DNA of 64,000 nucleotides from Rhodosorus marinus CCMP1338 (lineage: Eukaryota; Plantae; Rhodophyta). The DNA lies in assembly GCA_029953675.1 (NCBI GenBank), contig JAMWBK010000009.1, forward strand, positions 1,178,001-1,242,000, read 5' to 3'. Below, piece by piece: positions 1 to 39,128 of this stretch. The notes below the pieces were generated by a model. That model saw nothing but the letters and a program-made list of their open reading frames with translations, was not told the origin of the DNA and ran no database searches. The position numbers and the translations under genes are program-made. The first letter of the stretch is position 1, and the number at the start of each line of letters is the position of its first letter.

Positions 1-38
1 CTCGGGTTGGCAGTAGGGAGGACACCGACTTCAACACG

Positions 39-674
39 ATGGGAGCGAGAGATTTCGATGCGTATTTGCAGTTGGATTCAAGGTTTAACGGGACCATGCT
101 GCACCAGAGTCTCGTGGGGGCAGGCCTGAATGTGGTGGTTGAGGAGAACCTTCCTTACGACGCTGCTACGAGGATGGATTTCTGTTTCATTCTTGGGAGG
201 GAGCCAGATTTGGAATCTGTCATAAGCAACGCTGAGGAGGACGAAAATCCGGTTTTGGAACGGTTTGTAGGGACCATCTTGTATTGTAAGAGCAATGGAA
301 AGAAGCTTGTGGCTCTCCTGGTGTGCGGATTGGAATCGAACGATTCAACAGCATTCGAAATTGTCCAGAGAGTGCTAGGGCGTGATTGTCGGACAATGCG
401 AACGATTGACGAGTCGAACATGGCAAAGCTGATAGTTGGAATTGTTGCTGAGGAAGTTGGTAATGCAAATAGCTATGCAAAAGATCCCCCCAGCGCCGTG
501 CCGGAAATGTGCAAGCAGCTCGTAGGTCTTAAACCAAAAGCCGTACTTGAGCTGGCGGAGGAGCAATCGCTGGCTGATCTGTCGTCTATGACAGCTGAGC
601 AATTGCTCGAACTAAAAGCTCTTGGCAGAATATCTTCGAAAAAGCTGTTCGACTTCTTTGGTTCCGCGCTCTAG
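39..674 (+). CDS. XPF/ERCC4-family inactive-nuclease-like protein with C-terminal (HhH)2; FAAP24/ERCC1-like
   Basis: Intronless 211-aa ORF. The C-terminus (EMCKQLVGLKPKAVLELAEEQSLADLSSMTAEQLLELKALGRISSKKLFDFF) fits the tandem HhH of ERCC1/FAAP24. Length and N-terminal pattern resemble FAAP24. Confidence 0.55.
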   Translation: MGARDFDAYLQLDSRFNGTMLHQSLVGAGLNVVVEENLPYDAATRMDFCFILGREPDLESVISNAEEDENPVLERFVGTILYCKSNGKKLVALLVCGLESNDSTAFEIVQRVLGRDCRTMRTIDESNMAKLIVGIVAEEVGNANSYAKDPPSAVPEMCKQLVGLKPKAVLELAEEQSLADLSSMTAEQLLELKALGRISSKKLFDFFGSAL

Positions 675-785
675 GATTGTATGTATTCGTCTCCATTACC
701 GGAGTAACAGGGTTTCCGTATCAGGCCATCAGAGATAAGATTTTCACAAAAAAAATATTGAGGAAGACTCTATGTTCATCTGTAC

Positions 786-1326
786 TTAACCCTCCGCGTA
801 TTTCTTCGCCACCAATCGCTTGTACTCTTCTTGTTGGCTCCACAATGAAGCCGCTTGGTTGTTTAAGGGACTGTCGTTGTTTGGCTCATCAAGAAGGCTC
901 TGAATTGAAAGCAGAATTGATTTCACCGTATATGTCGCGCTCCACTTGTCTTTCAGAATGTCCAGGCAAATATTCCCACTCATGTCCACGTTGGGATGAA
1001 AGCATCCAGTCATAAACTTCACAGTTGGGGCGCTGTACGGGTAATCCTTCGGGAAGACTAGTGATAACTGGAATTTCATGCCTTTGTACGGTCCCACATC
1101 GCTACCGTGAATTGTTCCTGTCCATTGAGTGTAGTTGTCTCCGTCTGGAAAGGCAGATACACCTGGTACACCCTCCATCTGCAAAAAAAAGGTGCACATT
1201 CGAAGTATTCAGCAGTACTTCAAAGAGATGACGCAGGTTTTAAATATTCTATTGACTACGTTCAATGCTTACCATAAGGTTCATCAGCTCGCTCTGAAGC
1301 CGCTTTGCTACCTGCCCGTCCGCCAT
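786..1326 (-). CDS. UBE2C: Ubiquitin-conjugating enzyme E2-C (APC/C E2; UBC19/20-like)
   Basis: Exon 1326-1273 ([18 protein letters not shown]), GT-AG intron 1272-1179, exon 1178-786 with SAFPDGDN and [21 protein letters not shown] (catalytic Cys). Confidence 0.92.
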
Positions 1327-2811
1327 CTTTCCTGTCTACCTCCGAACCACACGCAGCACTGACTGAACAGTTTGACTTCTCTTCCTATCACGTACAACGA
1401 TGGTTCTCATCAACCCCCTTCCCGTGACCTGAGTTGGATACTATGGTATAATAACTCTGATTCCTCTTCATACAAGAGGAATGCACAGGTGCCACATACG
1501 CACTGTCAGCGTTAGGGGAGCGTCAACGTTCACCTCGCATGAAACTAGCCGTTACGTTTGATGGATTTCCCATTTTCACAAAATTTGCTTTTGGTTTATT
1601 GTGGCATTTGGAGAGTTTGGGGAGTGCGAGGTACTCACGAAAACAATTATTGCCAGTGTCCCCACACAGTCAAAAGATGTTCCTTTGCAAACCCCTATGG
1701 ACTCGGCTATCCGTGAGCGGGGCCGCTTTGGACCGCAAGCGTGTTTGTGCGTGATCCTGAGGAGAGTTGTTGAATGAGAAGGGCGTTCACCAATCTAGCG
1801 GTATCATGGCAGACAACATCCTAATCGACGTCTAGGTCCACACTACGTGCATATCATCAATGACCACTCGATTTTGAGGAGAGAAACGAAGCTTCTTGGC
1901 TCTAGCGGTATGGCGGACCTCTGTACCGGAGTCCGTTGCTCTACTAAACAGATGACGACGTCAACTCAAACAATTTGGAACTGAGACAGAGATCACAACC
2001 TCATTAATCATAGAAAGCACGCTTTCACATATCTTCATCTGAAACTAGTACAGGAGCAACCCCCAAAACCCCAAGGGCAACCCTGCGGTGCTCTCCATTC
2101 CGGACAAATTGCCGAAGAAGCGTCCAACATCGTAAAAGTAGATCTGAAAATATTTCATTAAAAAAACAAAACCAATCATTAAATACGATTTTGACTGCGA
2201 ATCGTGATATTGACACGTGTCCAAAAAATATTGGCATTTTTCTTTCACGGCGGTATATGTTATTTACGTGCCCTTCGCACAGTATATTAATTTTTGACGA
2301 TCCACAACATGTCTATATCGTTTGTATTTGCGAAGAAAATTTATTCCTTATCTTACACCACGATCAAATATCGTATTTTAGATATTCCGCGGATATAGAT
2401 CTTACTTTCACTCTTACCCGTAGTTAAAAGTCATGAAAAGAAAAATTCATAATTAAGAAGCAATTTTCTAGATATAAGACATTACCCAATTTAATGAATA
2501 AATAAATCTCTTGGATCTAGAATCGAACAGAAAAAATTCAAATTTTGAGTGGTCATCAGACAAAAAATTAGGCTAAGGGATTTGTTTTTAAAAGAGAGAA
2601 AATTCGGATAAATATATATCACGATCGTTGTAGATGTATTGCTTCGAGCTGGATCGGGGCGGGTATCATATGAGTAGAATATGTTCTCCTCCTCGATGGA
2701 AGCGGCTAGTGGTACATTGCAGATCGGGGACGTTTTGCTCTTTTGGTTGGTTTCTTCGATTTTCTAGATTCTTATTTCTTCTGTTGGTTTCTGTCCGTAT
2801 TTTTGATGAAG

Positions 2812-3776
2812 ATGTGTGCGTTCGTGTCATCGGCGGGTGTGTCCCTGAGGAAATCCAGCTCTTTGTGCTCCAAGGGTAAATTGCAATGACCTCAAGGTTT
2901 TTGATTTTCTGGCGAGGGGAGGGAGGGAGCAAGTCTTGGGATGTCCCTTCTATTTGAATAAGCTATTCTCAGGCTGAGCTTCTGTCATGTGCTTTGATTG
3001 CAGGGTTCCTGGGTAGCCCGGCGGTCGTCGTGAAGAAGACGAGCAGCCGTGCGGTTGTGCGTAGGGGGCTGTTCAGCTCTGCAGCTGAACCAGAGGTCAC
3101 TGACAAGGTTTACTTCGACATTACCATTGGAGGGAAGCCTACTGGAAGAGTCACCTTTGGTCTCTTCAGAGACGTTGTACCGAAGACGGTTGACAACTTT
3201 GTCAAGCTCAGGTGAGCCTGAGATCGAAGTACCAAAGCGGTAACTGTCTCACCACCGTCTGCTTTGTACTGTGCTGACTCTCTGTTTTCATTCGTGTGAC
3301 GATTCAGTACTGGAGAGGAAGGATACGGTTACAAGGGAAGCATGTTCCACCGCGTCATCCCGTCGTTCATGATCCAGGGAGGAGACTTCACCAACTTCAA
3401 CGGAACCGGTGGCAAGAGCATTTACGGTAGAACATTCCAGGACGAGAACTTTGAGCTCAAGCATGTTGCCCCAGGATATTTGTCCATGGCGAATGCTGGC
3501 CCGAACACGAATGGATCTCAGTTCTTTGTTACAACTGTTTCCACGCCGCATCTTGACGGGCGCCATGTGGTGAGCTGGGGAATCGGGGCGACTTTGAGGA
3601 CTTCCGACGTGTTTCCGTTTCTAACCCCTTTTTCCCGTTTTTTTTTCCTAAACAAGGTTTTCGGGAAGGTCATCGACGGTATGGACGTCGTTTCTACGAT
3701 CGAGAACACCAGGACTGGAGCGATGGACAAGCCCAAGGAGGATGTTGTGGTGGAGAGCTGCGGTGTTCTAGAGTAG
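2812..3776 (+). CDS. Plastid-targeted cyclophilin (peptidyl-prolyl cis-trans isomerase)
   Basis: Exons 2812-2875, 3004-3211, 3308-3569 and 3657-3776 join in frame. Transit peptide [23 protein letters not shown]; motifs [48 protein letters not shown]. Confidence 0.93.
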
Positions 3777-3933
3777 AGTCTAGGCTCATTGTAGTAAAAC
3801 CGAAGAAGCTGAAGACAATTGGAAGTTTGATTTTGCCTCACAGAAACCGTACTGTCTCCTGAATGGAGAATGTTTAATATGTTCACACCGTTTGCTATCA
3901 CTTTCACCTCTTCCTATGCATACATGCCTGTAG

Positions 3934-5119
3934 TTAGCTCAATTTCTTGGAATAATTGGAAAACCCGAGCCCAATGCAGCTCAGCACGACGGACGATTCG
4001 TCCCGTTCCGGAGCCACTTTAAATTCTACACCCATAAAATCCCGCAAATCGCGAAGGAGCTGCACTGTAAAGCCGCTCAGCCTTCCAAGTCGAACTGAAT
4101 GGACATCCTCCTGACCAAACGCCATCATCAAGATTACGAGCCCCTGATGGTTGCTATCAACGCATCCTCCAGCATCGATCTCCTCAAGCAATCGACTACA
4201 AGCATCAAGCGCTACCTTCTCAGGATCATTAGCGTCTGGCCCAGAACTGGCATCTGCTACTGTTAAGCAATGCGTCGTCGACTCGGCAAGTAGAGAAAGT
4301 CCGAAGCCTGGAGACTCGCCGCCAGTTCTCTTTGCGTGATGATCAGTGTATATGTACACGTCAGGTGTGAACCTGTTCAGGACACCTCGAGCTGCACCCA
4401 CAAGCCTATTGGTGTAGGATGGAGCAACTCTAGTTGAGTATGCTACGCCTCGAATCCTCTTGACAACGCCAGCATCAGTAAGCTCCAGAGGCTAAGGAAA
4501 AACATGATGGTTGAACTTATGTGAGACGACGGAAGCATTCAAAAGGGTGCGGGAATCTGGCTGCAAATGGACTCACCGGAATCGATTTAGCATTCTGACA
4601 CGTGAAAATTATCAGGCCTCCCCCGCCTGGCTCGGCTCCGCGCTTGACCAGTTTTACTGACAGGTTGATTCCAGCAACTCGTCTTAGTAGCGGTATTGTC
4701 GTGCTCTGGATGGAGTCTATAGCAAGTGCGCTTTCGGAATTAGTAACCCCGCGGAACTTGATTAAAACAGTGTTCTTACAGAACAACGCTAGAGGAAGTA
4801 TCCACTCGACGAAATAGCCAATAGGCCTGCCGACGGGGCACTCGTGCTCAAATTCTCCACCTACGGGCACACCAGGAACCAGTCGTATTGAAGTCCCTGT
4901 CTCATTTATTTTAACTTTAGATCCGTTAGTAAGTTTGTCCACTAGCCTCAGAAACGAAACCTCATAGTCCTTCAGTCCAATTCCACCGCCGTCCAGTGAC
5001 TCGTTAACTCGAATGTCCTCAATCACTATAGTGCGTCCCGCTAGCACCGACAGAATCAACCGCGAGCGGAGATTCTTCGTACCGGCAAACCTCACCGTTT
5101 GAGATTTACTGGAATTCAT
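3934..5119 (-). CDS. RCL1: RNA 3'-terminal phosphate cyclase-like protein (18S rRNA processing)
   Basis: Two exons. Motifs LRSRLILSVLAGR, IGYFVEWILPL, RGAEPGGGG, LNRFTPDVYIYTD, GGCVDSNHQ, VLSCIGLGFSNYSKK. Confidence 0.93.
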
Positions 5120-6813
5120 CTAACATACGGTACACTATTTGGAAACTTCATTACCTTCCTCCTGAGCTTCCCTATACTCCCATCCACACCATCCGCGAAT
5201 CCTTTCCCACGCACGATGGCCGTGGACCCCTCCTCCACTAGCATGTAGGCCAATTTGTCATGATTAAGATCATATTTTGACTATATATAGAATAATATGA
5301 GAATTCATGAAGAATAGAAGTATATGTTCCTAAATCTGTGAAAACATGGGATGTACGCGTCTATGTTTAGACCAGTCGGCTGGGAATTTAATAGGTTCCA
5401 GTCGACTTGAGACTGTAACTCTCGGGTTACCACACTGGACTCGTGAGAGTAATAGGATAGTGCCCCTATGACGCGTATGATCCGAGGGTAGCTCTAGATC
5501 GCGATGCGTCTTCTGGCACCGCCGCTTTCCGCTCCCCACCGCGGCGGTTCCAGGTCCCACAGCCACGGTGATGCGAGACGTCACTGGATTAGGTTCGCAG
5601 TACAGATCTTTGAGCATCACAAACTGGAACGTAAACAGCGAACAAATGTCTACATCCCTCCACAGAGGAAGTGAAAAGGGGCTGATTAGCGAGATACAGA
5701 TCGTTTCACAATGAAGTGCGAAGAAAATATTGAATTTGTTGCGCGCTTATAACTTCCACTCGGAAATTTGGTCACCCTTTACTTCAAACTAACCCAAACA
5801 ACCCAAGCATGCTAGCCAGGGTTTTATTGCTGTTTGGCTACTACTTGTGGAAGGACATTCACTAGGTACAATCAGGGAAATCACTACTAGTTACCGCGGT
5901 TCTAGACCTGGCCAACTGTTCGAGGCACTTTTCTCGACTTGGTATCATTTTGCTTCCTTCAGATCGTTCGCGGCCTCCTTTGGTCCCATCTAGGGTTATT
6001 GCGCCACGTTTCCTACTCACGACTCCTTCTGACCGTTCTCCCCTTCTCACATCTTGGTGTGAGCGCAGCTTCCCACTTTGCGGGCTCCAAACAAATTAAA
6101 TAATTTCATGATCGTTTACTAGTTCTGTACACCTCCCATTGGCTTATAAACAACAGACAGCCTGTCGGACGATTTTTCGGGTGTTCCGATTGGCGAAGTG
6201 GACGAGGTTGTGCAGAAAGGCTAACTGGCTTTTTGATCGATTGGTACGGTTCTGATTTGGTTTTTCGCCTTTGAATGTACTTCGTGACTAGCAATTGAGC
6301 TTGTATTGTCTGTTTAGTGTGAATCCTTGGATCCACCTCTTTAGATCTCTGGTGGTAGAAACGTAAACGCCTCACGGAATGCGTTCGAAAACGACGTCCT
6401 GGTCTCGTTGTCGGGCTGGGTGCGTTCGAGACCCGTCGGACTTCCTACGGCAAAAAGGGTTCTTCACTCTACGTACAAGTATTTTCACATATATAGTGAA
6501 AAATATGGAACCTGTGGGGCTGGGCATGACTCGAGCTTTCTTGTTGAACCCCTCCCCCTGCCCCCGAAAGGATCGCAGCGAATGGGACACTCGTTCAATT
6601 GTCGGACCGGTTGCTATTATTTATTACCGTGGCGAGCTGTGTTGTTTCATGAGGACCAAGCAAGACCCTGCAAACTGCAACTAGCAAAATGAGGGAAGCT
6701 CTCTGTCAAGGGGATTCGTTGTGAGAATCTCGAACTCTGCTTCTTGAGAAGCTGCTGGGTCGCTGTGGGGCTCCTGGAACTGGGCGGGAAAGTTGTTCGA
6801 ACGGAAGGGCTCG

Positions 6814-8289
6814 ATGGAGGCTGTTGGCTTTCATTCTGGGATTCGAGTTCCTTTGGGAGCACAAGCTCAAGGTCGAAGGAAATCCTGTCAATCAAGACCT
6901 GGTTCTCCGAAGAAGCTGTGGAGAGCACCTTTGAAGACCAGACGGGTTGCACCTTTATTCATGACTCTCAACCAACCGTACGGACCAGAGCCGCCTAGGC
7001 CAGAGGACATTGATCCAGAAGGCAGTGGGGATAGAAGCAGAGAACGACTCACTCGTGAACTGGCTTTTCGTATACTGCTGATCGTCGTGGGCAATGTGGC
7101 CTACCAGCTTGCATTCTATGGTCAAGTAAGTTTCCAGCTAAGCCAATTCAGAGTGCCGATAGGGGATGGGGTGTTTGGATACGCGGATGTCCTTTTCCTG
7201 TCTACCTACATGCTTTTAGTGAGACCCTTGCTCAGGCTGCTGCACTTCGTGCTGAAAAGCTTTGGTCTTATGAAGGAGTGCTACAAGGACACGTTTATGC
7301 AGGCCTTCGAGCCCCCCCTGTTTTGGCTAGGGGCGCTGTTTGTTTGGTTAGTTTCGTTCGACATTTCGAAAACTATGTGCTTGTACAATACAGAGTACGC
7401 TACCCTATGTTCAGTGTTGAACCCCACTCTGGTTCCCATCAGCGTCGCTGCCTACGTGCTCGTGCTCGCCAACTTTGTCAAGAATCTGCTGACGAGAGAC
7501 ATCGACACCAGATCGATGAACAGAAGAATGCGCGCTGAATATGCGTTGGTGGAGAAAGCCTTTACGGTTGCCTCGATAGTTGCAATGGTTGGCTTTTCAG
7601 CGTACAAGATCGGAGTAGCACCTGGCACGCTCCTCACGTACGGGAGCTTCAGCACGCTTCTTCTCGGTTTCGCCGCGCAACATTTTCTGAAGGACGTCGC
7701 CTCAGGCTTTATGATATTTCTATTCAAGCCGTTTGTGGTGGGCGACAACGTGAGACTACCGAGTTACAAAGACGCAGGCCTCTTGAAGGTCGTCGATATT
7801 GGCTGGATATATACGGAGATGAGACACTGGGATTCAAGCCCGGTGATTCTGCCAAATTCATCGCTTTACGGCAATAGCATTATTAATCGGTCGTTGAAGG
7901 AGTTTGCCTACTTCACCGAGGTCGTACACATAAGATATTCGGATCTGCCGCGGATGGAATCGCTCCTTGAATCGATGACGGAGTACCTTTGTTCGCGACC
8001 GGAGGTCGCGTCTGATTCGTCGACTCCGCTGGTGATCATTGAGAAGCTTGATTCAAGCTTCATCGACGTTCGGCTGATGGTCTGGCTTGTGAACGTAAGC
8101 ACCAAGCGGAGGATGCAGATCAGCTCGGCGATCCTTCTCGGACTGGCAATGAAAATCAATGAGTTCGGATGCGAATTTGCCTTCCCTCGGATGGAGATAG
8201 CCTCAGACCTTGCGCCAGCTACAAGTTCAGGAGATCCTCCGTCCGTGTCCCCATCGCTCTCATCAGCGTCGAAGACTAACGGGACGTAA
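6814..8289 (+). CDS. Small-conductance mechanosensitive channel (MscS family), probably plastid-targeted
   Basis: Intronless ORF with first ATG at 6814 (MEAVGF, transit-like). Several TM helices, then GFAAQHFLKDVASGFMIFLFKPFVVGDNV, IGWIYTEM, VILPNS and EFAFP. Confidence 0.9.
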   Translation: MEAVGFHSGIRVPLGAQAQGRRKSCQSRPGSPKKLWRAPLKTRRVAPLFMTLNQPYGPEPPRPEDIDPEGSGDRSRERLTRELAFRILLIVVGNVAYQLAFYGQVSFQLSQFRVPIGDGVFGYADVLFLSTYMLLVRPLLRLLHFVLKSFGLMKECYKDTFMQAFEPPLFWLGALFVWLVSFDISKTMCLYNTEYATLCSVLNPTLVPISVAAYVLVLANFVKNLLTRDIDTRSMNRRMRAEYALVEKAFTVASIVAMVGFSAYKIGVAPGTLLTYGSFSTLLLGFAAQHFLKDVASGFMIFLFKPFVVGDNVRLPSYKDAGLLKVVDIGWIYTEMRHWDSSPVILPNSSLYGNSIINRSLKEFAYFTEVVHIRYSDLPRMESLLESMTEYLCSRPEVASDSSTPLVIIEKLDSSFIDVRLMVWLVNVSTKRRMQISSAILLGLAMKINEFGCEFAFPRMEIASDLAPATSSGDPPSVSPSLSSASKTNGT

Positions 8290-8336
8290 GGCGATGGCTT
8301 CTGACTCAGTTGAGTTTCCCCTCAAAAAGAATTCTT

Positions 8337-10622
8337 TCACCACTGTACAGGATTGTTCGTATCTAGCGCTCGCTGGGGAACTGTGTACGCCAGGGGGCAC
8401 TCTTTCGCCTTTCTTCGCAGCTCAGCTTCGAAGAGATCTGTAAAACTAATATTGGCATAGCTACGTAGAAGAATTGGATAAAACAAAAGCCAAATAGAAG
8501 TTAGTGTAAGGGAGACTTGAGACTCGATCTTCTTCTTGGGTGCGTCAGTTACTCTTCAACGACTCCGGGAAGCGTAACGTCCTTTGGAGCTTTCTTGCTC
8601 CTCGAGTCTTTCTCAAAGGAATGGTACATTCGAGCAACTGCTGGACAGTAGTGGTGCTTCAGTGCCTCTAATTCCCACAAGGAACTCTTGTCAGCGTTGG
8701 ACTTCTTAGGATCAACTGTGTCGTCGTCGAAAACGTCCTATGTATTAGAGATCAGGAACCGAGCGTGGCCGCAATTTAGAACGAGATCTCCGCACGAGAC
8801 GAATTGGTAGCTCATACCTCAGAAAATTGGGTTCCATGGATTTGTTCCTCAAAGGGCTTGCTCGGCTCTGAAAAGTTCACGACCACACGCTGGGCCTTCG
8901 TTTCGGGGTTGTGCACAAGCACTACCACGGACGGGTGTCTATGAATCAACTCAAGAGCAACTCGCATGCACCAGAGCGCTCCTTGAGGAGGTGCCCACAA
9001 CGCCCTTCGAAGCAATCTCTTCAAGAATGCAGCTACCAAATACACAGGGATGTACCCCGACGATAAGAACTTTAGTACCAGCGTCATAAACCTTTGAAGC
9101 GCGCGAAAGAGATCACAGTTAGACGCGTGATTTTCGCGAATCTCAAGCACCTCAAACCACTGCTCGAGGCCTTAAGACGTACTTCTGTCGATCCCGAGCC
9201 AAGAAAAGGTCAGGGCTTAGAACCCCGTAGAGCTTCTCGTAGAAGAGCGGGTACTCCAACCCATGAGCGTTGATCAAGATCCACAGCGACTCCAAGGACA
9301 CAACCGCAGAGATGCCGCCTCGGTTATATGCAGAGAGCAGAAAGTCCGAGAGTCGGATCGGCTCCGGCATGTTCGGAATGACTTTCTCCGGCAAGTTGGA
9401 CAAAACTTGATCAACAGACTCGTCGGGGAGCTTCATTGACAGCACGTTCAACCAGCATTCCCCAAACGCTTTACGTTCTTGCTTGAAGTAGGAGCTCTTC
9501 CCGCCAAGGTCCTGTTTGGAGACGGCGAGCATCTCTCGGTTTTCAGTTACAAAACTACGCCAAGCGGCGTTTGTCAATCCTCCTTTTAAGCATCTTACCT
9601 CTGCTTTCTCACGGAAGGCGAACTTGTGCTTGTTTTGCAGCAGCTGCACCGGTTCATCGACAGATTTTGGTATTTTCACGAAGTCAAGCAGCCTCAGACA
9701 CCGCGAGACGACAAGCTCCTCATCGTTTCTGCGCTCACTTCGATACTTTTTACAGATGGAATCCACTAGGTTGAGAACTGAGAGCCGAACATCATCGAAT
9801 CTAACCGGAACGCACAAAGCTGTAGTCAGAAACTGCTCCCTACAGCTGCAGAGCGTTAAAAGTACGGGCAGGCGGACAGGATACACGCCCGCTTCGACTT
9901 ACTCCCGCAAGTAGCCGCCTAGATGGTTGATGACGGAGTCTGTTTCCTCCAAGTCCGTGTCAGTAAGTAAGTGTTCAACGATACCTTGCAGGGCCGCATG
10001 GAAAAGGTTCCAGCGCGCAGCGCAAGTCAACAAAACTGCCAGAGCGAGTTTGGGTAGGGCGGTCTCTTCTCGTAGGACATAGTTCGACAACGTCTCCAAA
10101 TATGTGTTTCGACGTGCAACGAGCCAGGTCATCACCAGAGCCTCCTCAGGGTCGATTGTTCCTGTTAAGATGAGTTGAATTAAGACCTTTGAGCGGTGCA
10201 TTTCACCCGTGGCAGACGAAGATGGAGAGAGTTGCCCCCTACCTGCTTTCTGGTTAGACTCGAAATGATCTTCCAAAGCTGCAAACGACTCCCTGAGCGA
10301 ATGAATTAGCGTCCGCCTCTGGCCGAGTTCCAGGCTTTCCACAGACATCTTGTTCAGAAGCGTTTGAATGTTCTCCATCTACAACGGGATTCATTGCAAG
10401 GAAAAGAGCTTTCACAAAGTGAGAATTTTTTTTTTGACGGGTCGCCAACGGTGTAAACCGATATTGATCAACTCTCCTTACACGTTCAATTCCTTTCTCA
10501 ATAACCTCATTCTTCAGCTTTTGAACGTCCAATCCGTCACCACCTTCAGTCTCAGCGTCCTTTCCAGCTTTCCTCTTCCGATTGCCTGGAGCCCCGTTTG
10601 AAGCTCGCTTCCTCTTACCCAT
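8337..10622 (-). CDS. NOC4: Nucleolar complex protein 4 (CBF/Mak21 domain)
   Basis: Multi-exon. Basic N-terminus MGKRKR; LSDFLLSAYNRGG, LEYPLFYEKLY, VAAFLKRLLRRAL, SSLWELEALKHHYCP; last exon YANISFTDLFEAELRRKGERVPLAY ends in TGA at 8339-8337. Confidence 0.88.
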
Positions 10623-11464
10623 CTTGCAGACCACACCACTCTTAAAAAACTAAAGCCAGGCCAACCTAGAAACAAACTATGTCCGTTCTCCTCTGCACCA
10701 TTCCCAACATCGGATTCTCCTCATAATCAACCGTTTACTGCTTGCCCAAACACGAAGCCATCACGGACTAGCATGCACTAGCTTGAAGACGCCTAAGCCG
10801 TAGTCCGAATCAGTCTCTCTCATGCTTATGGCATCCTTCTCCTATCGATCGATTCTATGTAAACGGTTTCATTGCTGAAACAGTTCAGTCGAAGTTTGCA
10901 CCTGCGACAAACCCCCACCGACGACGGATACTAGAGTTGGTTGCTGTTTTGCTCGACGACAAAGATGACTGGAGGGGAGAGCGAATAGCGAGTCTTCTCC
11001 TGAAGAGACAGGTCAATAAATCGAGTCATTAAGAAGGTCTTGCCCGTGTGGCGTGGGCGATACCAACACTAACATGCGACAACTATGGTGGCAGAATTCA
11101 CAACCAATCATCACCCCACCCTCCCCGGAGGATCCACGCTGCCGAGCCCGCATGAACTCAAAACGAAGCGAAAGACGTTCGATATCGGTGTCAGAGTGTA
11201 TCGTTCTGAAATCATGTTTAGCCAGTCGTCCTCAAGGCTACTAGTGAAGTCAAAAACTTGCTGCCAAGCTCTCCAAAGCAGTCCCGCTTCCGTCTTCCTG
11301 GTCATCGTCGGTCGCCGTGAATATAGACAGCTGAAACCACATCAATCCATTTTCAATCATTATTAATTTATGAGATCGAACTTCATGTGCTATTTGAGGC
11401 TCAGTCATTATTGCTGGGACGCTTTATTTATCCAGGAACGGCATTTGTACAATGGCTAGCTGGA

Positions 11465-13400
11465 TCACGTGATCACAGTTGGACCATCCCTTCCGGAAAA
11501 TTCTCCTACCTTCGTAAGCAGAAGCGCTACGTCCACCAGAGGTTGCATGGCCGATGTGGTTTCAACCGACTGTCGATCTTGGTCAGTTTCATAGTACTCC
11601 AGGTATATTCGAATTGTTGCCCCAGCAGATCCGGTTCCGGACAGTCGAACCACAAGCCGAGAACCGTTCTCAAAGAGGACTCGTATGCCTTGCTTTTCTG
11701 CCTTGCTCTTATCAACTGGGTCTACATAACTAAACTCGTCCAGGCTCTTGATAACAAAGCTGGTTGGCAAACACGTTAAACGAACGAAAAACCTCAGTGA
11801 AGAGTTGTCATACAACCAACCTGAGTCAAACGGTCACCTTACCCGCCTGGTAACTCTGTCGGGGGATTCTCTTCGAGCGATGTCAGGTAGTCCATCATTG
11901 ACTCTGCTCCTTCCGACTCAACGTTCTCGTAGTCATAGCGCAAGTACAAGTTTCGACCTGTTTGGGGTTACAACTCAGATAACTTCTGCGCGGCTTTCTT
12001 CCAAATTCGGAGCTTGGACGCTTACCGTATTTTGCCCAATGTTCTCTCACTATCTGTTCCACCCCAACTAGCTCACCTGTGGGTGTGCCTTCATTCCGAT
12101 AGGCAAGAATGGACAACCAAGCCAGAACCGCCCACAGGCCGTCCTTCTCCCGAATATGATTTGACCCGATTCCAAATGACTCCTCGCCGCATATGCTGAG
12201 CATTCCGGCATCCATCAAGTTGCCGAAATACTTCCATCCAGTCGGCGTTTCGTAGAGATTCAACCCTCGAGCGGCAGCAACGCGGTCAACTGCTCCGGAA
12301 GTTGGCATAGAGCGAGCGAGACCTCTAACACCATCCTTGAAGAATGGGATAGCACGTTCGGCATAGTCCGCTATAACTGCTAATGAGTCTGAAGGTGTAA
12401 CGAAAAAGCCTTTGCCTAGAATCATGTTCCTATCACCATCACCATCAGAAGCTGCTCCAAGGTCCGGGGCGGAAGGATTCTGGGACGGGTCCATAATCTC
12501 CAGTAGCTCTTTCGCATAGGTCAGATTGGGATCAGGGTGCCCACCCCCGAAGTCTTCCAGCGGAAGCGAATTGATTACAGTGGCCTGTGCAGCTCCCAAT
12601 TCCCCCACGAGAACGGCATCGGCACACAGACCGCCCGCGGCATTCATCCCATCATAACACAAACTGAAGTCCTCTCGAGCGATGAAGCTCTTCAGCTTGT
12701 TGAAATCAAAGCAGCCCCTTAGGACGTTGGCATGGTCGTCCGTTGAGCTGATTACTTCGACTACGAAGTTTCCCCCGTCAAACGACGTCTCGCCAAGTGA
12801 AGAAGTGTCCACATCTGATGGAAGATCGAGTGTTCGATACTGGTCGATATTTAATGTTCGTTCATAGACTCGATCAAGTAGGACCTCAGTAGCAGGAGAT
12901 CCGGACTTTGTGTTGTACTTAACCCCCCAGTCACCGTTTATTCCCCCCGGGTTGTGGCTTGCGGTCATAATGATGCCTCCAAACGCTTTTCGTTGAATAA
13001 TGCACGCGCTCACAGCGGGGGTACTCATGACACAGTCTTTTCCAACTATGACCCTTGCAACTGCGTTGGCTGCTGCCATTCTAATGACGGTCTGTGCCGC
13101 GATCTTGTTGTAGTAACGTCCATCGCCACCAAGAATGAGAGTTTTTCCTCGCAGCTCATCACCAAGGCAATCAAACAAGCTCTGGATCCAGTTACAGACA
13201 AATTTAGGTTCCTCAACCAGCACCGAAGTTTGTTTTCTCAGTCCAGATGTCCCAGTTTTTTGTCCAGCTATCGGAACCGTCGGCACAACCTGAACGTCCA
13301 GTCTGGAAACCACGCGGCTCCTGAGACACCTCCGCGATCGATCGGCCCTCAAACTGTGAGGTAAAATTGCGGGAATCGCTGAGACCCATCCTATGCTCAT
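11465..13400 (-). CDS. PGM: Phosphoglucomutase with transit-peptide-like N-terminal extension
   Basis: GQKTGTSGLRK, active-site TASHNPGG, metal loop DGDGDRNM, CGEESFG, GTGSAGATIRIY. Introns near 12030-11960 and 11840-11815; ATG at 13400. Confidence 0.93.
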
Positions 13401-13822
13401 GATTTTCTCCGTGAACATCCACAGCTTCTTCGTACTTCTTCCCCAATCGATCGACCCACCGCACCAGGCAACCGACCGAAGAGCGTCATCCCCACCCACC
13501 TTACAGCAATCTCATCCGATCTGCCATCCAAACCAAGACCTTCCGTTATATTTTAAGCCAATAATATATCTCCAAACGCCACAATGGATATTTAAGGGTT
13601 ATAGTTCGATAATAGTGATCATATCCATTCTTGATTGATGCAATCTAAACTCATAATATTCTTTAAAATATGATTCTGCAAGCCGTTACGCGTTTTCATT
13701 AGATGCTTTCTGCAATTCGACGATTTGATTCGAAACTAGGATTCAACCGCAAACGTACTATTGGAGGATGAATATTTCTAAATTATTTTAAGATATATAA
13801 TTGGCTATTCGAAAACCACTAA

Positions 13823-15463
13823 TCAACCATTCGCATCGATTTTCTCTTCGTTGAGTACTGCTCGTGGGTCGTCCAGGTGCTTGGCTTCCTCCTTCATCGA
13901 GGATGATTTGATCTCAAGCCCCCGCTGTTCAAGGCAGCTAATGATATGAGCTGCAGCTTTCATAGCGGGACTGTACTCTGGAGGGTGAGACTGAAGGAGA
14001 TTGTCTATTACCTTTGAGAGCTGAGCGGTCTGGCCCAAGCGCATGCCTGTCTCGTCGAACAGTGATCTGCAGTCCCTCACAAGAGATCCGAGATTATGAA
14101 AAAGTGAATTCTAGGAGAACTGTCTTTCGTTCTGGGAGTCGTATTGTTCTTGGCGTGGAAACATACCTGAGAGCGTTCGAGAGCTTATTAGGCTCACACG
14201 CGGTGCCCAGAAATTCGGGTATGATTTCCTTGTTTGCCAGTATGTTCGGTATTGACGCGTACCTTACTTTGGCAAGATATCTGCCCATGAGCGCGCGCAA
14301 CCCACCAGTCGAGTAAACTGACAACAAGGGTGTTCCCAAAGCCGCTGTTTCAAGAACCACAGTGCCAGAAACCGCCATCGCAGCATCGCAGGCCTAGAAT
14401 GGGTGGAGGATTTGCCGTGAGTTACAGCTGATGCGGGTCAAGCGGAGAGAGTATAGTAAACAGACCGTCACGGCCTCGACCATATTCGCACCCCCGCCTG
14501 GAACTAAAGTCACATCGACGCTTTTGTCCTTCGCGCAATAATCCTCAATCAACGACCGTACTGGTGATGCATACGGAAGAAGAGCACGCGACACTGATGT
14601 CTGTGATATCCACCATACTTCAGCTTTACGGTAGGAGGCAAAGCGTCTTTTTAGCTAGCTTCTCACCTGTCGCAGCACTTCGAAGAACAGGCCAAGATGA
14701 CTGGAAACTTCCTGAGTCCTGGAACCCGGTAAGAGCGCAACGAGCTTTTCCGTTTGCCCTACTCCATACATAGTCCTTATCCGCTTACGGATTTGTTCTC
14801 CAGCGACGGAATCCTTTCGAACATTAAGAAGTGCCCTATTATCGAGCAGCGGTGAGCCAACGTAGATTGTGTTCTCAGCTCCGAGCTCTTTCCAGTGTGG
14901 CTCCTCGAACGGGTACAGCAAAAACATGCCGTCGAAGAGGCTTGCGAAGCGACGAGAGCGATATCTTGGTCGCTTCCAAGCCCAAATTGACGGCGCAACG
15001 TATTGGAACATTGGAGGACTCGGCTCGTGCAAGTTCCTGTACTCATGTTTCAGCGATCTCGCAACCCTGCCGCTGAATCCGTTCGAATCTATGAACACGA
15101 TACAGTCCGGTTTTCCTTCTAGGGCTACGTTCACTACGCGTCTCTTGAGCTTCAGAAAGTGCGGAATCCTTGAGAATACTTCCTTGAATCCCATAAAAGA
15201 TAGCTCCTCTACCCAGAGCACAAATATGCGCAATTAGTTAGGCTCAGTCATTTCAGTCATACTTCTACTTGCGCGCACTATGCACAGAGCCGCTTACCCA
15301 TAGGGAAGATCTCTTTGTCCATCCCGTTTGAACGCATGAGGTCTCCACCGACTCCCCAAAACCTGACTTCACATCTGAGCTGCTTTCTCAGCGCAGATAT
15401 CAGGTGCGCTCCGATGGCATCTCCCGACGCCTCGCCCGCAACCAGCAGTACTTTGAGAGGCAT
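13823..15463 (-). CDS. lpxB: Lipid-A-disaccharide synthase
   Basis: Five exons. VLLVAGEASGDAIG, QYVAPSIWAWK, LYPFEEP, YVGSPL, LLPGSRTQEV, AMAVSGTVVLETAALGTPLL, SIPNILANKEIIPEFL. Confidence 0.92.
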
Positions 15464-15464
15464 C

Positions 15465-16081
15465 TCAGCTGGAGGGATCCGGTTTGGCCTCTGCCTTAGC
15501 TAACAACTCGGTGGTTATCCCACGGAATGTTCGGTCCATCACGAAGTCAACACCGTGGTCGATGGGTCCAATAATTACCGGAATAGATGCAAGCCCAACT
15601 ATAGTTGGCAACACAGCACTAGCCGACTTCCCTACACGACCTATCGAATGCGATTCTCCCCGCTTAGTACGAAGGCGAGCATCCGATCATCTGGTAGTTC
15701 ACGTAGTGCAGGAGCACGGACACACTTACCCAGTTTACAAGCACTCGAAGTCAGAGCAACAATTCGGTTGATAGTGATTCCTGGAACGATTACGCTCGCC
15801 AAACTCTGCCAAATAAGGGAGTCCCCAGCCTGTAATGCAACGCGGATCCTCGAGCCCTCCCCGGAATCTCTCTCCAATTCCTTCTGACACTGATAACACG
15901 CGTCGGCGACAACGTATCCGGATGAAGTGAGGTAGGAAGCCAAGTAAGATCGCCTGGAGACAAACCTCTTGAAGCTCTCCCCGATCTCATTTGCGTATCC
16001 CAAGTACCGAATCCATGTGTCCCGCGTCAAATTCTTTTCCTCAATTCGCAATACGTTCCCCACTCCGATCTCTGACTCCAT
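15465..16081 (-). CDS. MTFP1: Mitochondrial fission process protein 1 (MTP18 family)
   Basis: Exon 16081-15730 (RDTWIRYLGYANEIGESF; DSLIWQSLASVIVPGITINR), intron 15729-15641, exon 15640-15465 (PTIVGLASIPVIIGPIDHGVDFVMDRTF), stop TGA at 15467-15465. Confidence 0.9.
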
Positions 16082-16339
16082 AACCTCCTCGATGCAACTT
16101 TCGTCTGCAGGGCTCTTAAACTTAACTCTTCCGGTAAGCTTTGATAGAAAACAAAGTTCGCTCACTTCAATACATTCTGGAAGGAGCAGATTGCACTCCA
16201 GTAGCTCTCCTGGTTGGGTATGTTTGTTGATCACAGAACCCTCCTCTCTGGAAACCCTGGCGATCGAATACGACTTGCGCCATTTCCACGGCGTTCACAA
16301 ATCGCCGCCTGCGGCCATTGATCGATGCAAAAACTCCAG

Positions 16340-16382
16340 GACACGTGGTACTATTTTTGTGGATGATTTATCGACACGTGGT
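16340..16382. promoter_or_regulatory. Pair of G-box-containing direct repeats (GACACGTGGT x2) upstream of MTFP1/lpxB
   Basis: Identical 10-mers at 16340-16349 and 16373-16382 containing CACGTG, about 260 bp upstream of the MTFP1 ATG. Function is inferred only. Confidence 0.3.
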
Positions 16383-19300
16383 GTTATATTTATGGACAAG
16401 AGCAAAGGACAGCTGGTACCACACTCGATTGGTCGTGCCTGGTGTCGAGCGGTTCTTCTGCTAGGAGACGCAGTGGAACAGAGACTCAAGACCGAGTTCT
16501 GACCTCTAAATTGACGTTTAGCGCATCCCACCCCAATTCTGCGAAAGCGAGAGAATCTCATCGATGTCCTGGGCAGTGGGTCATTGGTGCTTAACCGCTT
16601 CATTCTCTTCTGCACTGCGCTGCACACTGCCTCGGTTCTCGAGGCGCCCCTCCTAGTTTCTATTAGTTCGGGGACCTTAGCCTCCGACTAAACCGATCTT
16701 ATCTGTCTGTCTATCTCATTACTCATCTGTGCGTCTATCTCTAACGGAATGACTTCAGAGCGGGTTTCATCCAAAGCGGCTGGATGCCTGGTTTGGCACA
16801 TGCCGCTATGAGACTGATACTAGTTCTCGGTGTATGTGTCAACGCCTTCTTGTATGGTCAAGCGTTTCCACTTTGCCGGCTAACACAACTCCTGCTGGCT
16901 TGGCGGAGCGTAGGTAAACCGTATCGGGTCATCCATTACTAAGTGCAGCAAGAAATCATCTAAAGGCAACACAACAGAATAGTTTCGATCAGCGTGCCGC
17001 ATCTGCATTGGATCCGTACTCTAACTGATCACGGAGGGTGACCATGTTTCGTATGACACGTGCATTGCTGCTTTACAATGTGTTAGAACTCTTTGGGGAG
17101 GTTCTCACACAATGTTCGTTGCGGATCAGGCGCACTGGGGCAAGACTTCGCGCAACAAGAGCTCCATGCACAATTTTGTCGGGAAGTCCACAGCCACGAG
17201 ACAAACTGTTGCGGACAAAGGCCGCCCGAAAGCAGCGACACCACTTCGAACGAAAGAGGACAAAATTCGAAAAGCACTGCAATAACCAGTTCACATCTCG
17301 CTTCGAAGACCGTATCAAGTCCATAATCAAAGTCAAGGCACGATTCACTACCCATACCAATGGCAGGTATTGAAACATCAACACTAAATTGCGCTTGCAG
17401 TCTAAAAACAACCGTTACTTCGAATGCGGAGGCCAAGCGTGCGCATTCAAAAAGCGCTGTTGCTTGGCTACCTTGCTCCCAAGACAGTCACAGAACTTTA
17501 TCATGATATGCCTGCTCTTCGCCAATGCCAAGGGCCTGTACTGTATACATCCGAACCGGGCCAGGACAGTCCTGAACCTGTCCTACTCAAACTGAAACTA
17601 GAATTGCCAAAATTGTATAGAGATCTAAGTACTGCTCCACCTTTTTCGTCCCTGCGCTTTCTCAGGACTTCCTGCGTGGAAAACGAAAATTAGGATACCT
17701 AGAACTTTCTCAAGATATATTTAGAATATTTCGTCTAAAACTAATATATAGTTTTCTTTTGAGCGTGCCATCTTTAAAATACGTAGAATTTCTAGATATA
17801 CTCAAACGGGTCTAAAACGAGTAGCAGACAGTTTCGGCGCGGAGGTAACAAAATAGAACAACTCCGTAACCCACAGCGTAAATACCTACCGGCAGCTCAG
17901 AAATCGAACAAGAGCTGAAATTATTTCCCAAAAGCATATAATTATGAATATTTATGCCAGATTTTATGCTAGTTACGGACAGTCAGAAACAAATTAATCA
18001 GTGTCGGACAGTGACTTTGTATTTGAATAATGGGAAAAAAACGAATGGACAGGAAAACGCGAAGTTGACGGAGAACCGCCCGGGGGCTTCATTTTTTGTT
18101 TCTATTTAGAAGATCGTTCGCCAGGTTCCTCTTAAGAAATTAAAGCTAAACATTATTACATTCGACTCATCAGGGAGCAGCTTGAAACTGTTAGCCAATT
18201 AGATTGAACGTATATTTTGCGCTTTGGGGTCTCTGACGTGCACCTTTTTTCCAAAGAATAGAGATAGATTACCAGACCAGCCTCCTCAATCTACGCACGT
18301 ATCTGTAAAAGAAGGACCCTGCTACCGATTTTAGGCTTTGCTTCATCCAGATCAAATTGAATACATTTATTATGATATATTTTTCCCCATTGCGAGAGCT
18401 AGGATCTAGGAATATCTAATTTTTCTTGAAAACGGAGAGAAACGTGCGTGTGTACCCTAGCTAGAAATGTTTGGGCAGGTATGGAAGCTCTAGACCTGGA
18501 ACATTGGAGTAAAAACATCGAAAATGAGCATTTTTAGGATTTAACAATCATATATTAATACCTCCATTAGTCTACTAATAGAAATCTGCTCTAAAACCTG
18601 TGTCGGATAGGGCTGATTAGGTGTGGTCTGAAAAACCGATGTGCACCAAATAAACCAGGAGCTTTGGAGTTAGTAGATGAACAGCGTAGAGACCCTTTTA
18701 GTTTTGGAATGAACGACCCCCCTCCCCCCCAAAAAACGCTGGAAGCTATATCCTCCATTCTACGCTCATGGAAAAATAAATATTTGGGATGGCTTTTGGG
18801 AGGTTTTTTCTTTCACATTTTGAATTACGGTCGACTAAAATAGCCTCCCTCTCCCCCTGTCGAGGTAGATAAGAAGCCACTCAGATCAACCGTAGATTCT
18901 CGACCAATAGTAAAACCTATTGATCACCGCCCTCAACAAACACGCTTGTCCCATTCGTTTTCTCCTTTTTTCTTGTTCACCTGGAGGGGAGAGCCTATTT
19001 TTCAGTCGACCGTAATTCAAACCTCGCCCAAAAAAAAACCAAAAAAACCCTCCATTCCACCCAAATTTCAGCAATGAAAAAACGGACAAAGGGTGTGTGA
19101 TCAAGCAAGCGCATCTATCACATTACTACTATGCGGTAGCAAAGAGCAAACAGGGGCTCCGTATTATCCGTTGTAACCTCATTAAAATGCTAAAATGCTG
19201 CGTCCAATCAAAAATAATTTGGAGGGGTTTTGTCCGCGATGAGAGAGATATATATTTTAATAAAATGAGTATTGATCGCTTTTTCTGGAACTAAACAATA

Positions 19301-20238
19301 TCCAATTATTTGTTAAATTTCGACAGAAGAGAAAACAAAAGCCCTCAATCATACCAAAAAACATCATTGATCTTCTAGTTTGGGGGGAAAAAAATGAAGA
19401 GGGTGGGGAGGGAATTGGACCCTTTCGAAATAAAAAACATTCAATTTATTATTATGGAATTTTTTAATACTTCTTGTCCGATGCCTAAGCTACGGTCAAT
19501 CCGTCCTTTTTTTGCTCGATATTTGGTTGTATAAATAATGGATGTTAGAATTGAATATAGCCTGGGATTCCGATAAAGGATAGGGAGGAGGGAAAGCGGA
19601 GGGGGGTAAGGATAGTCCATAAAAGCGTGCGGTGGGTTTTGAATAAATATTTGAAAGGGTTTTGTGATTTTTCGGTACTGTAGTGTTCTGCTAAGTAAAC
19701 CTAACATCGACGGGGGTGTCAGGATGGTGGGTAGGAAGGGTGAGAAGGGGGGGGAAGGGGGTGGTCGTGAGTACTGTTATCAGTCGATGGACTGGGGTCT
19801 TTATCTGGTGAAATTGTTTCCTTTTTGGAAATTTTGAGATTTGTTCTGAGTAGGGGAGGATGTGGGGGTGCGTACATTTCTGGGGTGGATAGACTTTTGG
19901 GGAGGGGGGGTTTGGGGCTGGGTTCTGGATTGGATTAGAGTGAACTCGAAAATTGAACAATAAATCAATGGAACACTTTCTCTGAGACTGGTCACCTTTT
20001 GTTGAAAGGTGCCAAGGATAGGGATAATCTATGCTTTTTAAGGGAGCGTTTCGGTGAAATGCGAAGTGCATATATGAGCTGGGTGGATTCTGTAACGGTC
20101 GGGGAAGTTCAACGAACTGTGTGCAAGGCGTGCTGGGTGTAGATGGTGTGAGTGTAGCTAAGCTGTGAGGTACCTGTGCTAGGTTTGGGAACGTATAGTC
20201 GTGATTGTAGTAGAGTACTGCTGTAGAGTTCGGAAAGC

Positions 20239-38987: not shown

Positions 38988-39128
38988 CTAACAGTGAGTT
39001 AGAAGAAGGGAACACTCACCGGTTTTTCCATCCGGCAATTTGCGGACAAATCTAAAAACTAACAGTGAGTTAGAAAAAGGGAACACTCACCGGTTTTTCC
39101 ATCCGACAATTTGCGGACAAGTTTAAAA
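38988..39128 (+). repeat. Two-copy tandem repeat of about 71 bp
   Basis: CTAACAGTGAGTTAGAA(G/A)AAGGGAACACTCACCGGTTTTTCCATCCG(G/A)CAATTTGCGGACAA starts at 38988 and again at 39059. Confidence 0.9.

Follow-up and report, generated by a model that had tools for sequence, protein, structure and literature searches.

A candidate bicistronic MTFP1-LpxB locus with a one-nucleotide spacer in the nuclear genome of the red alga Rhodosorus marinus

A 64,000-nucleotide stretch of the Rhodosorus marinus CCMP1338 genome (positions 1,178,001 to 1,242,000 of contig JAMWBK010000009.1, GenBank assembly GCA_029953675.1; hereafter the window) was analyzed for two minus-strand genes, MTFP1 (MTP18) and LpxB, whose open reading frames (ORFs) are separated by a single nucleotide. 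A preliminary description, made from the sequence alone, had proposed that this pair is either bicistronic or spliced into an MTFP1-LpxB fusion. The contig is 1.83 Mb of nuclear DNA. The R. marinus genome (31.2 Mb, 8,392 genes, 24,821 introns, roughly 3.7 kb per gene) was assembled from Nanopore reads and annotated using BRAKER2 trained on RNA-seq (PMC10250338).

Sequences from three Rhodosorus strains were compared. The window itself is referred to as strain G. Strain A is represented by a 1,977-nt Illumina transcript contig from JGI (Ga0186194_102338, here L001), whose LpxB product is identical over the shared region to UniProt A0A7S0BHL1 (R. marinus). For strain B, the sequences were MMETSP Transcript_34075 with its related isoforms, JGI contig L002 (3300017118), and Logan contig L031. 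The resulting gene models are listed below, with positions counted from the first letter of the window and the supporting evidence in parentheses (UTR, untranslated region).

15730-16081, minus strand: MTFP1 (MTP18) exon 1, 352 nt, ATG at 16081-16079, ending in phase 1 (translation and PF10558; L001 nt 1-347 aligns to 16074-15728)
15641-15729, minus strand: MTFP1 intron, 89 nt, GTAAGT...GATAG, with a TACTAAG branch-like motif (spliced out in L001; retained in L002 and L031)
15465-15640, minus strand: MTFP1 exon 2, including the TGA at 15467-15465 (GLxSIPxIIxPIDxxVDFxMD motif and a variable 13-codon tail)
15464, minus strand: MTFP1-LpxB spacer, a single G (identical in the three Rhodosorus strains)
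15298-15463, minus strand: LpxB exon 1, ATG at 15463-15461, protein start MPLKVLLVAGEASGD (Pfam, alignment to E. coli LpxB, and L001)
15209-15297, minus strand: LpxB intron 1, 89 nt, GTAAGC...GGTAG (absent from L001)
14667-15208, minus strand: LpxB exon 2 (exon model and L001 alignment)
14601-14666, minus strand: LpxB intron 2, 66 nt (exon model and L001 alignment)
14466-14600, minus strand: LpxB exon 3 (exon model and L001 alignment)
14394-14465, minus strand: LpxB intron 3, 72 nt (exon model and L001 alignment)
14167-14393, minus strand: LpxB exon 4 (exon model and L001 alignment)
14067-14166, minus strand: LpxB intron 4, 100 nt (exon model and L001; retained in MMETSP isoform P0002)
13823-14066, minus strand: coding part of LpxB exon 5, including the stop at 13825-13823 (L001 and product match to GenBank KAJ8902417.1)
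13688-13822, minus strand: LpxB 3' UTR, minimum extent (L001 nt 1590-1968 aligns to 14069-13688)

Both gene identities given in the preliminary description were upheld, with Pfam scores above the family cut-offs. The MTFP1 product is 175 aa long, the same length as the MMETSP MTFP1 ORF P0121, and was matched by the MTP18 profile (PF10558) at 54.3 bits against a cut-off of 25, over profile positions 20-170 of 171. Family members from insects, birds, cnidarians, and diatoms have 32 invariant columns in common with it, among them the C-terminal PIDxxVDFxM core, and its C-terminus coincides with the ends of these homologues. Splicing of the intron keeps the MTP18 family frame, and the phase-1 donor described earlier for exon 1 is present as a GT at 15729-15728. 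Animal MTFP1 resides in the inner membrane (PMC9636241).

The LpxB product is 437 aa long and is 100% identical to the C-terminal 437 aa of KAJ8902417.1. It was matched by the LpxB profile (PF02684) at 230.8 bits against a cut-off of 22.6, over profile positions 1-355 of 374. As had been described, the protein begins at the fold without a presequence: profile position 1 falls on residue 5, and residue 6 of E. coli LpxB (PDB 5W8S, E = 4e-34) aligns to residue 2. The motifs AGExSGD, PGSR..EV, and SGT..LE are conserved relative to 5W8S. The NCBIfam equivalog model TIGR00215 scored 180.6 bits, slightly under its cut-off of 190.25; the protein is an LpxB family member by its Pfam and 5W8S matches, but its exact functional equivalence with lipid-A-disaccharide synthase is not certified. 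All four LpxB introns are GT-AG, and the presence of four spliceosomal introns identifies the gene as nuclear and not contamination. The two genes are thus non-overlapping same-strand ORFs for distinct conserved proteins, with separate Pfam hits in separate frames. Between strains G and A, dS was about 0.3 and dN/dS was 0.15 for MTFP1 and 0.27 for LpxB; these low ratios indicate purifying selection and hence that both are functional, translated genes.

The junction was re-read from the minus strand. Positions 15480-15450 are GGATCCCTCCAGCTGAGATGCCTCTCAAAGT, in which the MTFP1 TGA occupies 15467-15465, the G 15464, and the LpxB ATG 15463-15461, so that the stop-to-start abutment reported in the preliminary description was exact to the base. 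LpxB lies in the +1 frame relative to MTFP1. Its frame is closed upstream by a TAG (15502-15500), also as described, and the distance from there to the ATG is 12 sense codons, compared with the "about 10" given earlier. Stop and restart (UGA G AUG) therefore lie within a few nucleotides of each other, the spacing of reinitiation at a termination upstream ribosome-binding site (TURBS). The LpxB AUG has a G at -3 in all strains, and the MTFP1 stop is followed by a purine at +4 (UGA-G), which is associated with efficient termination. TGA-G-ATG is identical in the three strains although 6-9 of the 13 final MTFP1 codons differ between strain pairs; even the codon preceding the stop varies (AGC, AGT, or AAC).

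Collinearity of the two genes is kept in all three strains, with ~30% of synonymous sites differing, so the adjacency in relatives that the preliminary description had named as a check holds as the same junction in each. The searches turned up no further eukaryote with a closely related LpxB in which collinearity could be compared more widely. An assembly indel, also raised there, was excluded since three independent data sets (the genome, the Illumina transcript contig, and the Logan contig) agree on both frames and the 1-nt spacer. In the surrounding 22 kb, LpxB and phosphoglucomutase are separated by 404 nt and the other same-strand gap measures 842 nt, and the 1-nt spacing is exceptional for an otherwise non-compact genome. 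A spacer of one base leaves no room for a promoter. In a literature search for LpxB in algae, nothing was found on red algae, nor was any publication describing the MTFP1-LpxB locus.

Alignment of L001 to the window gave six blocks that correspond exactly to the exon model, with all five introns removed. The contig carries the MTFP1 stop TGA at 519-521, the G, LpxB at 523-1812, and a 165-nt 3' UTR; a single block of 344 nt covers MTFP1 exon 2, the spacer, and LpxB exon 1 without a gap. Because L001 ends shortly past the LpxB stop and does not reach phosphoglucomutase, the assembler was not simply chaining neighboring genes, and L001 looks like one transcription unit. From strain B, MMETSP Transcript_34075 contains a complete MTFP1 (g.133376, 175 aa) and a complete LpxB (g.133375, starting MALKV, with intron 4 retained). 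The L031 junction reads CCA TCC AAC TGA G ATG GCT; this contig is unspliced and probably genomic in origin. With spliced short-read contigs spanning both ORFs and the junction present in three strains, the bicistronic half of the earlier proposal is supported at the level of short-read assemblies, and the fusion half is not.

Many forms in the strain B assemblies (L002 and MMETSP Transcript_34076-34086) retain the MTFP1 intron or LpxB introns 1, 2, and 4, which suggests abundant unspliced RNA or DNA carry-over in the libraries.

Upstream of MTFP1, one further pair of features was recorded.

16340-16348 and 16373-16381, minus strand: two CCACGTGTC boxes, G-box-like, 33 nt apart, ~260-300 nt upstream of the MTFP1 ATG

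CCACGTGTC occurs nowhere else in the window, and both boxes are conserved in strain B (L002 and L031) amid indel-rich upstream sequence. The pair is the only conserved promoter-like element seen and, judged by its sequence, is a candidate promoter element of an MTFP1-LpxB unit.

The explanation that we tentatively prefer is a shared transcript from which LpxB is made by reinitiation. MTFP1 and LpxB would be separate intron-containing nuclear genes, arranged head to tail in one transcription unit, with the MTFP1 promoter driving a transcript through LpxB and full splicing yielding a dicistronic mRNA. MTFP1 (175 aa) would be read from the cap-proximal AUG and terminate at UGA-G, and LpxB (437 aa) would be an independent protein read from its own AUG 1 nt downstream. 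The most likely route would be stop-start coupling, in which a fraction of the terminated ribosomes stay on the mRNA and re-initiate; LpxB output would then be low, as would suit an enzyme. Translation of LpxB would also protect an mRNA with four post-stop exon junctions from nonsense-mediated decay (NMD). We infer both the single RNA molecules spanning the two ORFs and the translation of LpxB from them by reinitiation. A shared transcript was given weight because it explains why two genes abut in a roomy genome and why the one conserved upstream element precedes MTFP1. For reinitiation itself, the 1-nt spacing is favorable and the 175-codon first ORF unfavorable.

Several observations weigh against this explanation. 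Reinitiation after an ORF of 175 codons is normally very inefficient without a special element, and none was visible. The 199 nt around the junction gave a folding z-score of -1.31, with 22 of 200 shuffles folding at least as well, and the three-strain consensus fold carried a penalizing covariation term (+3.66) and no covarying structure. A UGGGA at 15522-15518, 59 nt upstream of the LpxB ATG, resembles calicivirus TURBS motif 1 but is unconserved (GGGGA in strain A, AGGAA in strain B). Nor was there excess synonymous conservation in MTFP1 exon 2 among the three strains, as an embedded element might leave: synonymous change affected 14-23% of codons there, 10-16% in exon 1, and 16-20% in LpxB exon 1. 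Four exon junctions lie 3' of the MTFP1 stop, and a dicistronic mRNA would likely be an NMD target unless the second ORF is translated. The MMETSP assembly of strain A has an LpxB ORF (P0003) with no accompanying MTFP1 ORF in the database, an observation compatible with a shorter transcript for LpxB alone. Transcripts that overlap are merged by short-read assemblers, so that spanning contigs are no proof of single molecules with both ORFs, and a true dicistronic mRNA and a nested monocistronic pair both fit the data. The same point was raised by Cho et al., who verified their transcripts by Iso-Seq and reverse transcription PCR (RT-PCR) (PMC9812998).

Rfam and tRNA scans gave no match. Exact-sequence look-ups of P0121 and P0003 returned no record. 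A scan for bacterial promoters and terminators was set aside, because its output stayed at chance level and such signals have no bearing on a eukaryotic gene.

A nested LpxB transcript with its start inside MTFP1 is about as likely as stop-start reinitiation, and it is quite conceivable, if short of probable, that the locus produces nested or overlapping monocistronic mRNAs, with an LpxB start in the MTFP1 intron or exon 2 and an MTFP1 poly(A) site in LpxB exon 1 or intron 1. The assemblies would then have merged two overlapping mRNAs, the LpxB 5' UTR would be MTFP1 coding sequence, and each protein would be made by ordinary cap-dependent scanning. This would be the conventional eukaryotic solution, requiring no unusual translation at a locus without any sequence signature of leaky scanning, an internal ribosome entry site (IRES), or TURBS, and short-read contigs cannot tell such a pair from a true bicistron. 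The unaccompanied strain A ORF, which begins at its own M, agrees with it. With a transcription start downstream of MTFP1 Met152, the leader in strain G would lack AUGs; with a start upstream of this invariant methionine, the leader would include a 24-codon upstream ORF ending 1 nt before the LpxB AUG. However, the interior of MTFP1 holds no conserved promoter-like element or excess synonymous conservation, an MTFP1 poly(A) site within LpxB would truncate LpxB pre-mRNAs too, and contigs from two independent assemblies extend from around the MTFP1 start to the end of LpxB. Nested transcripts also give no reason for a 1-nt distance in a genome averaging 3.7 kb per gene. A dicistronic mRNA from which LpxB is translated by leaky scanning past the MTFP1 AUG would be consistent with the spliced spanning contigs, and this route, one of those offered in the preliminary description, is experimentally supported in Chlamydomonas and Auxenochlorella (PMC11291117). 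It fits poorly here and is quite unlikely, because the MTFP1 start is not weak (ggttATGG, with G at both -3 and +4) and AUGs are not depleted. Ahead of the LpxB AUG there are three internal AUGs in strain G and six in strain A, several of them in a good context (gacacATGG, gtgATGG), and the strain G count does not differ from a codon-shuffle expectation of 3.9 +/- 1.4 (P = 0.41). The green-algal bicistrons show the opposite pattern, with a weak first-ORF context and AUG depletion (PMC11291117); neither part of this signature was found at MTFP1-LpxB.

Readings that join the two proteins turn on the following two features.

15500-15578, minus strand: extra 79-nt intron, in the GenBank fusion model only (supported by no transcript examined)
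15469-15470, minus strand: AG proposed in the preliminary description as an alternative acceptor (CCCTCCAG; AA in strain B)

GenBank annotates the locus as one 587-aa protein with both Pfam domains (KAJ8902417.1, NDN08_006822; UniRef A0AAV8UMB1). Adding the intron 15578-15500 to the gene models reproduced this protein (P0001) exactly, with 100% identity over LpxB and MTFP1 residues 1-138. Its acceptor AG is part of the TAG at 15502-15500 that closes the LpxB frame. A splice-made fusion, by this intron or by the junction 15730^15468, would anchor LpxB via the MTFP1 membrane segments. Both junctions are in frame in strain G. All three strains have an open frame across the 12-codon linker and keep the GT, AG, and URAY branch-like motif of the GenBank intron; conservation of the GT and AG follows from conserved Val and Leu-Ala codons, and the +1-frame linker peptides differ among strains (LRQRPNRIPPAE, LRWPRNPTPPVE, and LRQTSNQIHPTE). 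We nevertheless regard a fusion as very unlikely. The GenBank intron would delete MTFP1 residues 139-175 (37 residues) with the family-invariant PIDxxVDFxM core, and the stretch is kept unspliced in L001 and P0121; it was rejected on these two grounds, although a rare isoform that uses its conserved splice signals may exist. The alternative acceptor CCCTCCAG exists in strain G, as described, and its use would give an in-frame ...ACKL-AE-MPLKV..., but the exon 1 to 15468 splice was rejected too, since the acceptor is unconserved, the implied intron is 261 nt against 66-100 nt for the real ones, and the product is absent from transcript-derived ORFs. The relevant 90% clusters, with transcript-derived proteins from two strains and 12 MMETSP isoforms among them, contained no fusion ORF of either kind; those proteins start at MALKV or internal methionines, or are MTFP1 alone. 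The annotated fusion is most likely a gene-prediction artefact: BRAKER/Augustus would tend to join genes without intergenic space, and its absence here would have led the predictor to merge the two. The public GenBank/UniProt entry is most likely mis-joined and to be split into a 175-aa MTFP1 and a 437-aa LpxB. It is scarcely credible that MTFP1 and LpxB are really one gene, whether through a hidden assembly indel or a +1 ribosomal shift at AGC-UGA-G. The +1 placement of LpxB, its open frame for 12 codons ahead of the ATG, and an assembly based on Nanopore reads would suit such a gene. Against this stand the frames and spacing shared by three independent data sets, an MTFP1 that ends where family members end, and the lack of a conserved downstream structure, and the variable pre-stop codon (AGC, AGU, AAC) argues against a programmed shift. 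Frameshifting at the stop was accordingly rejected as a candidate, with its P-site codon varying and no stimulator present.

Outside Rhodosorus, the closest LpxB relatives are at most 37% identical and of bacterial type, and no other eukaryote appeared among the best 120 hits. The best-scoring relative (36% identical) sits among LolA, YhdP, and RuvA genes, a neighborhood that marks it as bacterial. A scan of JGI metagenomes for LpxB loci returned only distant ones (24-37% identity), none with MTFP1 nearby; judged from the length and composition of the hit list, and not hit by hit, most of these look bacterial. Such distant relatives could reflect a lineage-specific acquisition of LpxB.

A weak PDB match of LpxB (E = 2e-5) was obtained to 7tgh_T1 (also 8b6f, 8bqs, 8gym, and 8gzu), deposited as 'Lipid-A-disaccharide synthase'. 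We take these entries to be Tetrahymena respiratory-chain structures, although organism and complex were absent from the search output. If this is true, LpxB-like proteins can be components of inner-membrane complexes in some eukaryotes.

Elsewhere in the window, the ~4.2 kb upstream of MTFP1 (16082-20238) contain no GenBank gene, no notable long ORF, and no Rfam or tRNA match, which makes the interval unusually empty by local standards. An MscS-like channel (6814-8289, plus strand) and NOC4/CBF (8337-10622, minus strand) are modeled in GenBank as convergent genes with only 47 nt between their ends, which means that the 3' UTRs of the two have to overlap. Two plus-strand ORFs ~7.7 kb apart (33851-34204 and 41549-42082) have near-identical N-termini (MSEMNGKKLPPGELADMC) and are followed by similar membrane-protein-like ORFs; their sequences suggest that a transporter-like gene has been duplicated in tandem. 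A 71-nt unit is present at 38987-39128 in two tandem copies of 94% identity.

The strongest form of our preferred explanation is that a bacterial-type LpxB, for which the databases searched contain no close eukaryotic relative, is expressed in a mesophilic red alga only as the second MTFP1 cistron and is reinitiated after 175 codons without a TURBS-like element. We consider this doubtful. If true, reinitiation behind a long ORF would prove efficient enough in a cellular setting, and an acquired gene might gain expression by lodging right behind the stop codon of a host gene. If long reads confirm the shared transcript, nuclear polycistrony among red algae would no longer be confined to the streamlined Cyanidiophyceae but would include a mesophile of ordinary gene density, and the locus would be a bicistron outside the green-algal leaky-scanning model and a useful test case for algal reinitiation. 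The lipid A-like pathway is mitochondrial in plants. In a confirmed bicistron, an enzyme of this pathway would be combined with a mitochondrial inner-membrane protein, which hints at co-regulation; the functional connection of mitochondrial fission with lipid A-like synthesis suggested in the preliminary description is speculation.

Viral termination-reinitiation is exemplified by the calicivirus TURBS and by the UAAUG of influenza B M1/BM2. There, as at MTFP1-LpxB, a long upstream ORF ends a few nucleotides from the downstream AUG, and the downstream viral protein is separate and made at a low level. The 18S-complementary UGGGA and flanking stem, in contrast, are unconserved at MTFP1-LpxB, which would be a cellular, spliced mRNA; neither a conserved copy of the motif that defines a TURBS nor a gene-fusion transcript was found. 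In microsporidia and nucleomorphs, transcripts start inside or run into neighboring genes where intergenic space is missing. Compaction in those genomes is genome-wide, whereas the neighboring genes here lie hundreds of bases apart.

Within the red algae, polycistronic transcripts have previously been reported only for the Cyanidiophyceae (Cho et al. 2023, PMC9812998). These belong to the same phylum, and their multi-gene transcripts were likewise first noticed in Illumina assemblies before verification by Iso-Seq and RT-PCR; MTFP1-LpxB is known from short-read assemblies. The Cyanidiales polycistrons have no 2A peptides and no IRES, and their translation mechanism is unknown (PMC9812998). The Cyanidiophyceae are extremophiles with streamlined genomes and short intergenic regions, while Rhodosorus is mesophilic with ~3.7 kb per gene, and the pair is a local exception in it.

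Nuclear polycistrony is a well-documented feature of green algae (Gallaher et al. 2021, PMC7896298; PMC11291117), where bicistrons are translated by leaky scanning and show a weak first-ORF start context, short leaders, and AUG depletion upstream of the second ORF (PMC11291117). Like MTFP1-LpxB, they consist of two unrelated conserved same-strand ORFs with a very short gap, and some Auxenochlorella loci, with overlapping stop and start (PMC11291117), come near its 1-nt spacing. Several first ORFs encode a mitochondrial-membrane protein (TOM22), and collinearity is kept in relatives. Their weak first-ORF context, AUG depletion, and short first-ORF leaders were not seen at MTFP1-LpxB, and they have been proven by Iso-Seq, Ribo-seq, and proteomics, compared with the short-read assemblies available here. 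MTFP1-LpxB would add a mesophilic stylonematophycean case to these systems, and an atypical one, with its long first ORF, its lack of a leaky-scanning signature, and its 1-nt spacer.

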